A stretch of DNA of 64,000 nucleotides, taken from NCBI RefSeq assembly GCF_033153115.1, contig NW_026889806.1, positions 7,316,001 through 7,380,000 on the forward strand, in the 5' to 3' direction. The stretch is from Saccostrea echinata (Eukaryota). Below, piece by piece: positions 26,197 to 29,100 of the stretch (within the stretch, counting starts at the first letter, position 1; each line of letters opens with the position of its first letter). The notes beneath the pieces were generated by a model. That model was not told the origin of the DNA and ran no database searches. It was given only the letters and a program-made list of their open reading frames with translations. Made by a program: the position numbers and the translations under genes.

Positions 26197-29100
26197 CTTG
26201 TATCATGGTGAACAATTCCTTTTGAAAACAATCGTCCGTAGTGCAGCAAATTGTGTTCGTACCAGGAAACAACAGTCCTAAGGTCTGTTTATATTTACAT
26301 TCCGAGCTCTGCTCAACAAGAAATAAGTCATGCTATTATGTATTTCATTTATAATATATTGTATTTTCACAAAGCACGTATACAATGTTTTAATGTGTTT
26401 GATAAAAGAAAACTAAAAAATTTAATTTACATTTTGCAAGATAAATCGACATGTTTAAATTTACCGTGGTACATTTTGTTTGAATTCTGTTTCTTTGATT
26501 CTGAAGCATGCACACACCATTGCACGGCTGAAAATTTTCGGCGCATTGTGACGTCAATAAATCATCACAGTTATCACAAGCTGCTTGTTGCGCAGTTGCT
26601 GTCGTGATCTGTCTACTAGTTGCTGTGTCAAATGTTCTTGTTGTTCTTTGTTCATGAGATGTTAATAATGATAGGAGATTGGATGTTTTGTTAAGTGGTT
26701 GATAATCTATTGAATGAAAACTATTTGTTTTGAACATGAAAAAAACGAACATTTTTATGAATTTCATTTGCGCGCTCATCAATGTACTAACCAACAGAAA
26801 ATGCTATGATTGGTTCTGCACTGTTGTCAATCACGATGTGGGCGTTACCACTACCATCTACTGTGATCTTCTTCTGGCAGTCTGAAACAAGTTCACAATA
26901 TTCTCCGGCTGGTAGTCCCGTCTGTAAGGTCCTGTCCATGTGTCCACTTTTGGCCATAGCAAAGAATCCTTTCTGTCCACGAGCAAACGACACTTCCTCA
27001 TTTTGATTCCTCCAATGACTGACACCGGTTCCTGCCACGGCTTCTCGGAAGGCCGCCATGTTGGCTATTGGATTCCACCTGTGCTCACATACCCATCCAT
27101 TACCACAGGAACCATCAGCATTAATGGTGACATCTTTTGCTGAGTAGTCAGAATTATGCGGAGGGCCCTCGTCAAAGCCATTGATATAATAACTGCTCAT
27201 GACGCGGGTAAATCCATAGTTATATGCTAGGGTGAAAGCAACCGCCATTTTATAGTCACGTGGTGATTTATGAGTAATGAGATTCCCGCCCCCTCCGTGT
27301 CCTCTTTGGTTGTCATGGTTATCGACAAACACAAAGGCGTGAGCACTGTCAATCATTCCCCATCCGGGATCATAAACTCCGTGAAGCATTCCGAAATTAC
27401 GCATCCCCTCCGCGATCTTCTGACAATATCTGAATTCTGTCACGTAACCAAGATCTGTGTATTCTCCTACTTTTATTGCTCCGTCGTTTAGATCGGTCAC
27501 CTCATGGTAGAAAAATGGCCTGCCTCCCTCTGGAAGGTCCTTGACTCGATCTTGAATAGCTTTGATATCCCCAGGCCACATGTGCTTTGCAGCATCTATC
27601 CTAAATCCAGCCACCCCCAAGTCTACGCAATGATTGTAATACTCCACTATTTTGTTCCTTACATATTCCTGACTTTGATCCAAATCCGTGAGTCCCATTA
27701 GAAAGCAGTTTCTTACATTGTTAGGGTCCCCGTAATTGTTAACATTACCGTCGTGTGAGGGGCACTTGTCCCTGGAATTGAAGTGTTCCCTTCTGAACGG
27801 TACCCCCGGGAAATCGTAATTGTCAGAGTTGAAAGAGGTGCCTCCTGATCCTGTCCCCGTCCTCCCCAGTCCCGCCATATGATTTATCACAGAATCCACA
27901 TACACTCTGAAAAGGTAGTTCTTTATGTATTCTTTCTCCAGTTATGCAGCATGCACAAAGAAAAACTGACTAAAAATCTATTTTAAAATAAATGCATATA
28001 ATCTTATTCTAACCTGACGCCTACGTTTTTACACCTGGTGACCATGTCTTTGAATTCGGCCTCTGTCCCTCCCCGGCTGTAAAGTTTATAACTGACCGGT
28101 TGATATCTCTCCCACCACGGACGCATGGGGTTTGTGGTCACAATATGCTCATTTGGAGGTGAAACCTATACAAAAGCAGTCTAAAGTAAACGAGTGTAAA
28201 AGAAAACTAAAGGCAATTATATCTTGTAAACTGTTTTGCATTCATATAAATGAAATCATTTTATTCAAATAAACGATGTAAAATAAAAATATTCTCATAC
28301 GAAATCTAGAAACTGATATGATATTTTCTAAAATTGATTTAAACAAATTAAAGTAGAAATAGCTCTTCATTTTGTTTTCCGCATGCGTGTTCAAATGGAC
28401 ACGGGACTGCCATCTCATCTACTAGTACTGTACCTGAACTCTATAAACTTGTTTTATCTTATGTACCTGAACTCCACAAAACTGTTTCTTGCCGAGGAAC
28501 CTCTCACATTCATCTGCTATGTCTGTCCACTTCCATTCAAACAAGTGAACAATCACCTGCTTACCGTCACAGTGTGGATCTCGATAGTCTCCATGAACTA
28601 CTGACGTAAAAATACTTAATAAAGATTAATCAAAAGTCAGAACTATAACACATCAACTAACTTTTTAAAATTTTGATGAGAATATTAAAAGAATTGTTGG
28701 ACTTTCAGTCACGAAAGAGTTTGGTGGTAGTTCTCTGTCATTAAATTGCACTCCAGTTACAAATAAGACGGTATACAAAGTTGAAGTATTTTAAATTCTT
28801 AGGACTGTGTTCTTCCTCTCTTCTGTGATTGGTAAAAAATACATGATGTGAACATTTTCAATTATTTCATTGGTTAAAATGCTGTTTTAAGGCAAGGGAG
28901 ATAATTTTCTGATGATAAGTTTTTCCTGCGATTTAACAATTCTTCAAGATTTTCAATTTTAAAAATCTTTAAAAATATCGACAAAACAAACAAAAGAGAA
29001 TCTGAAAGTATTAATAATTTTTTCTATATTATCATGGTTTACACAGATTATTCTTTTTTTTACATGCAAACATTGAAATTTGTGTTTATTCTTTTTCTCT

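Follow-up and report, generated by a model that had tools for sequence, protein, structure and literature searches.

The minus strand of a 64,000-nt stretch of the Saccostrea echinata genome (contig NW_026889806.1, positions 7,316,001 to 7,380,000; the whole stretch is referred to as the window) carries three tandem animal-type alpha-amylase genes, one of which, copy B, ends differently from its two sisters, here called the 53-kb and the 17-kb copy. Copy B encodes an intact amylase and has lost the optional C-terminal domain that both sisters have kept. In transcripts, its amylase exons are joined instead to two exons for a small module with ten cysteines, and this module has a paralogue elsewhere in the genome. 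The explanation that we favor, with a probability of about 60%, is that copy B is an intact duplicate whose 3′ end was swapped for the two-exon module, and which would give rise to two products by way of a single weak splice donor.

A ten-cysteine module spliced to an amylase

Spliced contigs from public runs were placed on the window, and joints involving the cysteine exons are seen in three runs from two studies. The joint that leads from the large amylase exon into the first cysteine exon (26706/26792) is present in contigs of run X1 (30 letters on the shorter side, depth 2.2) and run X4 (41 letters, depth 2). The joint between the two cysteine exons (26308/26465) comes from the other study, where a 248-nt contig of run X2 matches without a single mismatch and with 70 letters on the shorter side. 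Both junctions had been predicted in a preliminary description of this locus, and both are thus found in intron-skipping contigs. In addition, an X1 contig covers positions 26541-26696 of the first cysteine exon with one mismatch, and a spliced contig of the same run connects 28465-28593 with 28013-28163, that is, exons 2 and 3 of copy B. In all, contigs of these runs skip four copy B introns exactly at GT..AG borders, and the runs therefore include cDNA. We conclude that the cysteine exons are joined to the amylase in real transcripts, beyond chance.

The 85-nt intron between the amylase and the module is also seen retained, in an X1 contig that runs unspliced across it (26668-26821) and carries insertions of 2 and 5 nt within the intron. 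Spliced and intron-retaining forms are thus both present. The contigs of both are shallow; depth of this kind is a poor measure, and isoforms cannot be quantified from contigs.

The first cysteine exon is entered in phase 1, with G+AT giving Asp, and opens with a Thr/Ser-rich linker of 38 aa that contains one NKT sequon. The ten cysteines that follow are spaced C-x2-C-x7-C-x6-C-x3-C-x12-C-x5-C-x16-CC-x4-C and span 65 residues from Cys1 to Cys10. Exon coordinates, phases, translations, splice sites, and cysteine spacing all agree with what the preliminary description had read from the same DNA; they are collected, together with the exons of the sister copies, in Table 1.

Table 1. Amylase and module features in the window (a slash within a donor marks the exon-intron border)
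Feature	Position	Strand	Basis or remark
Large exons of the three amylase copies	54947-53505; 27906-26792 (copy B); ~18337-17201	-	
Copy B exon 1: start codon and signal peptide	31874..31918	-	Residues 1-15 of XP_061165040.1 map at 100%
Copy B exon 2: mature N-terminus	28467..28607 (5′ limit approximate)	-	tblastn with XP_061165040.1 and protein P0006
Copy B exon 3	28014..28165	-	Sequence; joints 28163/28465 (cut +2) and 27906/28014, both GT..AG
Copy B exon 4, 1115 nt: remaining domain A/B and entire domain C	26792..27906	-	Translation; pig amylase alignment
Intron, 85 nt, phase 1, weak donor G/GTTAGT, ends ag	26707..26791	-	Sequence; spliced contigs X1, X4; unspliced contig X1
Cys-module exon 1, 242 nt: Asp, linker, Cys1-Cys6	26465..26706	-	Translation; X1 contig; gapless paralogue alignment
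Intron, 156 nt, phase 0, GT..AG, two residues past Cys6	26309..26464	-	Joint 26308/26465 in X2
Cys-module exon 2, 112 nt: Cys7-Cys10 (CC-x4-C-F), exit in phase 1 at donor G/GTATGA	26197..26308	-	Translation; X2 contig
Optional domain, first exon, 53-kb copy	53136..53342	-	XP_061165039.1 (705 aa) and a Candidula protein map here
Optional domain, further exons, 53-kb copy	52958-52727; 46018-45779	-	
Optional domain, first exon, 17-kb copy	16837..17114	-	Reached via 85-nt GC-AG intron
Optional domain, next exon, 17-kb copy	15848-15627	-	

Beyond the second cysteine exon, the X2 contig carries 65 extra letters past position 26196 which, by depth arithmetic, are not placed within 25674-26195. From the 26197 donor, the transcript is therefore spliced on to at least one further exon. 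A scan of open reading frames (ORFs) and acceptors downstream returned 26103-25988 as the sole phase-compatible candidate for a last exon, but the 65 letters of X2 are not there. This segment (25988-26103) has the acceptor tatcag and an open frame with a hydrophobic stretch of ~19 residues, a basic tail (RYSVKNRRKR...), and a stop codon. Its frame would resemble a membrane anchor for the fusion, yet the sole available contig does not use it. Further along, positions 24910-25673 form a repeat with a contig depth of up to about 13,000 in all four runs and with many "goes back" joints. It is situated close behind the cysteine exons and is probably a dispersed or tandem element that is either strongly transcribed or very abundant; the unplaced letters of the X2 contig could be located in it.

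Loss of the optional domain and a donor that doubles as stop codon

The amylase part of copy B is an ordinary secreted digestive enzyme. Its exon 4 contains the catalytic Asp/Glu/Asp motifs RIDAAKH, HEV, and NHD and ends in ...AFSV+G in phase 1, and the product matches PF00128. Two RefSeq proteins, of 482 aa (XP_061165040.1) and 705 aa (XP_061165039.1), can be placed on the window at about 99-100%. Since residues 26-478 of the 482-aa product align to positions 8-489 of the 496 residues of pig pancreatic amylase (E 7e-148), domain C, like domains A and B, is complete within exons 1-4.

Among animal amylases, two forms are known, of which one has an optional C-terminal domain of unknown function and the other does not. 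In the sister copies, the same phase-1 intron that follows the catalytic part in copy B leads into a Gly/Pro/Ser/Thr linker and a domain of ~220 aa, which is common to the ~700-aa amylases of Corbicula, Crassostrea, Haliotis, Daphnia, shrimps, and a starfish. This type of addition has been described as the "extra C-terminal domain" of animal amylases (PMC3096672). The presence of an unrelated domain at the position of the cysteine module in both sister copies had been noted before, and protein mapping and tblastn agree. The accompanying claim that the module replaces the usual C-terminal domain needs rewording: domain C is complete in the large exon, and it is the optional extra domain of ~220 aa that the module stands in for. 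No relic of it was detected downstream of copy B by tblastn with the domain exons of both sister copies.

The point of exchange is well marked. Nucleotide homology between copy B and the 53-kb copy, 88.7% over exons 3-4, ends at 26786, 5 nt into the intron. The large exons of these two copies differ by a dN of 0.023 and a dS of 0.28, giving an omega of 0.083. Taken together, the abrupt end of homology and the low omega point to copy B as a fairly recent, constrained, and functional duplicate with an exchanged 3′ end.

Copy B belongs to the same family as the invertebrate alpha-amylases of ~700 aa (GH13_15/24; e.g., Corbicula fluminea Q8I9P8; Da Lage 2017, Amylase 1:26). Like these enzymes, it has a phase-1 intron right after domain C, a flexible linker, and a noncatalytic appendage. 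Unlike them, it carries an unrelated 65-residue module with ten cysteines and can also be made without any appendage. A different kind of variation is seen in protein P0054, an animal amylase from a Logan contig, in which domain C is followed by a long Pro/Thr repeat linker and a cysteine-containing segment. Animal amylases thus seem to come with further types of C-terminal appendage.

The intron at which the copies part was said to be of equal length in copy B and a sister. This is true of the 17-kb copy, where it also measures 85 nt (17199-17115) and uses a GC donor (G/GCGAGT, 17198-17199), but the corresponding intron of the 53-kb copy has 185 nt. The last intron of the 53-kb copy, ~6.7 kb long, contains a LINE-like retrotransposon (RVT_1 at 47026-48630 and an endonuclease-RT match at 49381-50223).

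The border between the amylase and the module is unusual in that the donor itself contains a stop codon. The gt of the donor occupies 26791-26790 and is directly followed by an in-frame TAG (26789-26787). It is at this TAG that XP_061165040.1 stops, with the C-terminus ...AFSVG, such that the module-free form is the annotated form. The earlier proposal that intron retention at GGT-TAG would give a domain-less amylase is thus matched by an existing model, the RefSeq protein of 482 aa. The donor of the 53-kb copy, G/GTGAGT, differs from G/GTTAGT of copy B by one base. This single T, at position +3, both weakens the donor and creates the in-frame TAG, which explains why the bare amylase is also made and why RefSeq models only the bare form. 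Unspliced transcripts would yield the plain secreted amylase of 482 aa, and spliced transcripts would yield amylase, linker, and cysteine module plus whatever is encoded by at least one further exon. The donor of copy B exon 3 (28011-28014) is of the same weak G/GTTAG type, again with T at +3; even so, the contigs show it spliced.

Two further observations concern the array as a whole. Copy B is apparently mosaic: its exon 2 (28426-28612) is nearest to the 17-kb copy (85.6%), with blastn against the 53-kb copy blank, and exons 3-4 are nearest to the 53-kb copy, including a stretch of 111 nt that is 100% identical. This pattern of similarity over 26792-28612 suggests gene conversion between the paralogues. 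In addition, a single-exon galactosyltransferase gene lies on the plus strand between amylase copies (42694-43857; PF01762, E 4e-57).

One paralogue and a debatable kinship with LU domains

Six-frame searches of the 923-Mb S. echinata genome revealed one paralogue of the module, on contig C25, such that the family has two members. The paralogue has identical cysteine spacing, a second exon that is also 112 nt long, and the same intron phases (1/0/1). All ten cysteines are kept, at an amino acid identity of 39% in the cysteine part of exon 1, which aligns without gaps, and of 24% in exon 2. The gene that contains it is a mosaic comprising a VWA exon (PF00092, E 6.6e-30), two ShK-like exons with six cysteines each, one of which gives a weak PF01549 match, and a mucin-like tail rich in Thr. 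Directly upstream of this gene, the minus strand of C25 contains an open frame of 730 aa (12692434-12694623) which by eye shows leucine-rich repeats, a transmembrane stretch, and a TIR-like tail, giving it the look of a Toll-like receptor.

The module is thus a phase 1-1 exon pair that occurs in two unrelated gene contexts and therefore fits what exon shuffling predicts. The preliminary description had proposed exon shuffling as its source; the phase 1-1 set and the mosaic gene of the paralogue are both as expected, and we infer the origin itself from them. Judged from these gene structures, copy B is likely an amylase with a swapped accessory module, shuffled onto the enzyme. The C25 gene is not the direct, recent donor, since the divergence (24-39% identity) is too great. 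No relics of VWA or ShK exons were found in the window.

Searches for more distant relatives were blank. A word-indexed protein search with cysteine exon 1 gave no candidate, and an exhaustive HMMER search of the same exon against 1.84 billion representatives returned three repeat or low-complexity artifacts only, although a fused isoform could still sit within an amylase cluster.

The module had been described as Ly6/uPAR (LU)-like, which would imply a three-finger fold. LU domains are defined by 60-90 residues, ten plesiotypic cysteines, and an Asn that invariably follows Cys10, and by genes in which two exons lie between phase-1 introns and are separated by an intron at the tip of the second loop (Leth et al. 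2019, PMC6600238). Some of these features recur in the module. It has ten cysteines in 65 residues, and its exon pair is flanked by phase-1 introns (entry at 26706, exit at 26197), as is that of the paralogue. Like the members of Pfam clan CL0117, it starts with C-x2-C, ends with CC-x4-C, and stands in an extracellular context. The nearest known spacing is presumably that of CD59, which we take to be almost the same. Other features depart from the LU pattern. Cys10 is followed by Phe in copy B and by Val in the paralogue, whereas seven canonical LU second exons of the S. echinata genome all end in C-N; the internal intron lies two residues past Cys6 in both copies rather than at the tip of loop 2; and the gap between Cys4 and Cys5 is just 3 residues.

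Profile and PDB searches and fold predictions were made exon by exon, each of which sees half a domain. Genome scans with PF00021, PF16975, and PF17064 did not detect the exons of the module. The same approach does find canonical LU genes: PF17064 picks up 17 exons, with E as low as 3e-6 and a split at model positions 41-44 of 86, and PF00021 finds LU first exons of the ALKCYxC type. Pfam gave no match at E<=10 for any exon of the module or its paralogue. PDB sequence searches with single exons and two-row profiles returned chance matches only, namely, cobrotoxin b (a CC..C motif, E 8.6), yippee, and HA2, and the ESM Atlas provided no usable match for either exon. With hhalign, Cys1-3 and the following Phe of exon 1 align with QVR-type LU first exons of the genome (P 0.016, probability 2.8%), and exon 2 aligns with nothing. 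For the exon-1 half alone, AlphaFold2 predicted helices (pLDDT 79 in one model, about 55 in the others); with a two-row alignment, it predicted a hairpin at residues 64-79 (pLDDT 47). As these two predictions contradict each other, we give them no weight.

How, then, should the LU assignment be judged? It may be that the module is a separate, lineage-restricted, disulfide-rich domain that shares the ten-cysteine spacing by coincidence. The lack of Asn after Cys10 and the displaced intron would be expected of such a domain, as would the blank Pfam, PDB, ESM Atlas, and exon-2 hhalign results, and all the more so because exon-wise profiles detect canonical LU exons and never the module. Coincidence would have to account for a size and cysteine number that fit the LU definition down to the terminal CC-x4-C, for the phase 1-1 exon set, and for the fact that LU connectivity would place three disulfides (1-5, 2-3, and 4-6) inside exon 1 and two (7-8 and 9-10) inside exon 2. 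The hhalign match to QVR-type exons points the same way, as does the segment from Cys5 to Cys6, which resembles a beta-hairpin (the paralogue has a DG turn there, and a hairpin was predicted with low confidence), and half-domain tests are a handicap for any true but divergent LU domain. We hold the separate-domain reading tentatively, at slightly less than even chances, and the odds that the module adopts a three-finger fold appear about even on present sequence grounds. The original LU assignment keeps its spacing, its CC-x4-C end, and its phase-1 flanks and lacks the Asn, the intron position, and, in exon-wise searches, a profile match above noise.

Competing explanations, proposed role, and implications

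Several points weigh against copy B as a swapped duplicate with two products. The fusion is not modeled by RefSeq, and its last exon, hence its stop codon, was not located by the scan of ORFs and acceptors downstream. The spliced contigs are few, with depths of 2-4 and, in one case, just 30 letters on the shorter side of the joint, and the RNA nature of the runs is a guess. No homologue or orthologue from outside the S. echinata genome was found in protein collections; the architecture is known from S. echinata only, and the function of the module is argued by analogy.

One could therefore regard the fusion as a low-level, functionless by-product of splicing, in which case the 482-aa amylase would be the real product and the cysteine exons would be the decaying 3′ remnant of a neighboring gene cut short by the amylase duplication. 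This would suit a RefSeq model that stops at the TAG, a donor weakened by T at +3, an unspliced contig at least as deep as the spliced ones, the blank search of 1.84 billion representatives, and the missing 3′ end. It is harder to square with two cysteine exons that are both open and whose ten cysteines and splice sites are intact despite an identity of only 24-39% to the paralogue. Moreover, the joint between these exons is used precisely, the transcript is spliced again at 26197, and in X1 the contig of cysteine exon 1 is about as deep as the B-specific amylase contig (4.7 versus 5.4, depth being a poor measure). We consider a mere by-product unlikely. The cysteine exons might also form a gene of their own whose start codon and signal peptide would lie in the open 85-nt "intron." An ORF (26794-26390) in the frame of cysteine exon 1 does include two in-frame Met codons and a hydrophobic stretch within 26707-26794, and the unspliced contig over 26668-26821 would be compatible with such a transcript. 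However, 28 stop-free codons are not unusual in AT-rich sequence, such a gene could not have its promoter anywhere but within the amylase coding exon, and the protein collections contain no stand-alone protein with cysteine exon 1. An independent start inside the intron is further disfavored by the unspliced X1 contig, whose insertions of 2 and 5 nt break the frame in the putative start region, and by the paralogue, in which the homologous exon is internal and has the same phase-1 acceptor. A separate gene is thus highly improbable.

Returning to the swapped duplicate, the module would have been acquired by exon shuffling or by capture of a 3′ end after duplication, and the spliced form would be translated. 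The cysteine module may then serve as an extracellular appendage for protein binding or tethering, for example, to mucus, the matrix of the crystalline style, or the cell surface, by analogy with LU domains. LU exon sets are typically phase-1 flanked, and LU domains are protein binders (PMC6600238). The best parallel is GPIHBP1 and lipoprotein lipase, in which an LU domain with a disordered extension holds and stabilizes a secreted hydrolase at a surface (PMC6600238); these two are separate polypeptides, whereas the copy B module would be covalently fused to its enzyme. Because the module is small and disulfide-rich, sits on a stalk that can be glycosylated, and has its sole relative in a mosaic protein of the VWA/mucin type, its most likely role by this analogy would be to bind or tether the enzyme to a protein or matrix partner, in a manner switchable by intron retention.

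No amylase-LU or amylase-ten-cysteine architecture was found in the literature searched, including a 2026 survey of invertebrate LU architectures. The survey lists C1q, fibrinogen, Ig, MAM, 7TM, thioredoxin, permease, and VWA/VWC as partners of LU domains in invertebrates; the nonstandard LU architectures reported in molluscs involve C1q, fibrinogen-like, Ig, MAM, 7TM, and VWA/VWC domains (PMC13719153). Like the mollusc LU mosaics listed there, the module is part of a secreted mosaic and has its paralogue in a VWA-containing gene; unlike them, its partner is a glycoside hydrolase, of which none is listed. That survey used annotated proteins and Pfam HMMs and would miss both the fusion isoform and a module this divergent. 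More generally, the fusion isoform is absent from RefSeq, and HMM surveys of annotated proteomes would also overlook the module.

It is possible, if doubtful, that the module does represent an LU domain, albeit a highly divergent one, and that the spliced isoform functions as an amylase-LU chimera. If so, this would be the first glycoside hydrolase with an LU domain. The weak donor with its built-in stop codon would switch the enzyme between a free form and a matrix- or surface-tethered form, with an anchor possibly encoded by a further 3′ exon, and the LU exon pair would be a genuinely mobile module. In the view of Leth et al. (2019, PMC6600238), the LU domain is no more than a "proto-module," seldom adjoining nonhomologous domains; a real LU domain on an amylase would bear on this view. 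Whatever its fold, copy B offers a natural experiment on the role of amylase appendages, with an unrelated cysteine module or a bare enzyme obtainable from one gene, and it may provide a dated example (dS of about 0.28 to the sister copy) of exon shuffling onto the 3′ end of an enzyme.

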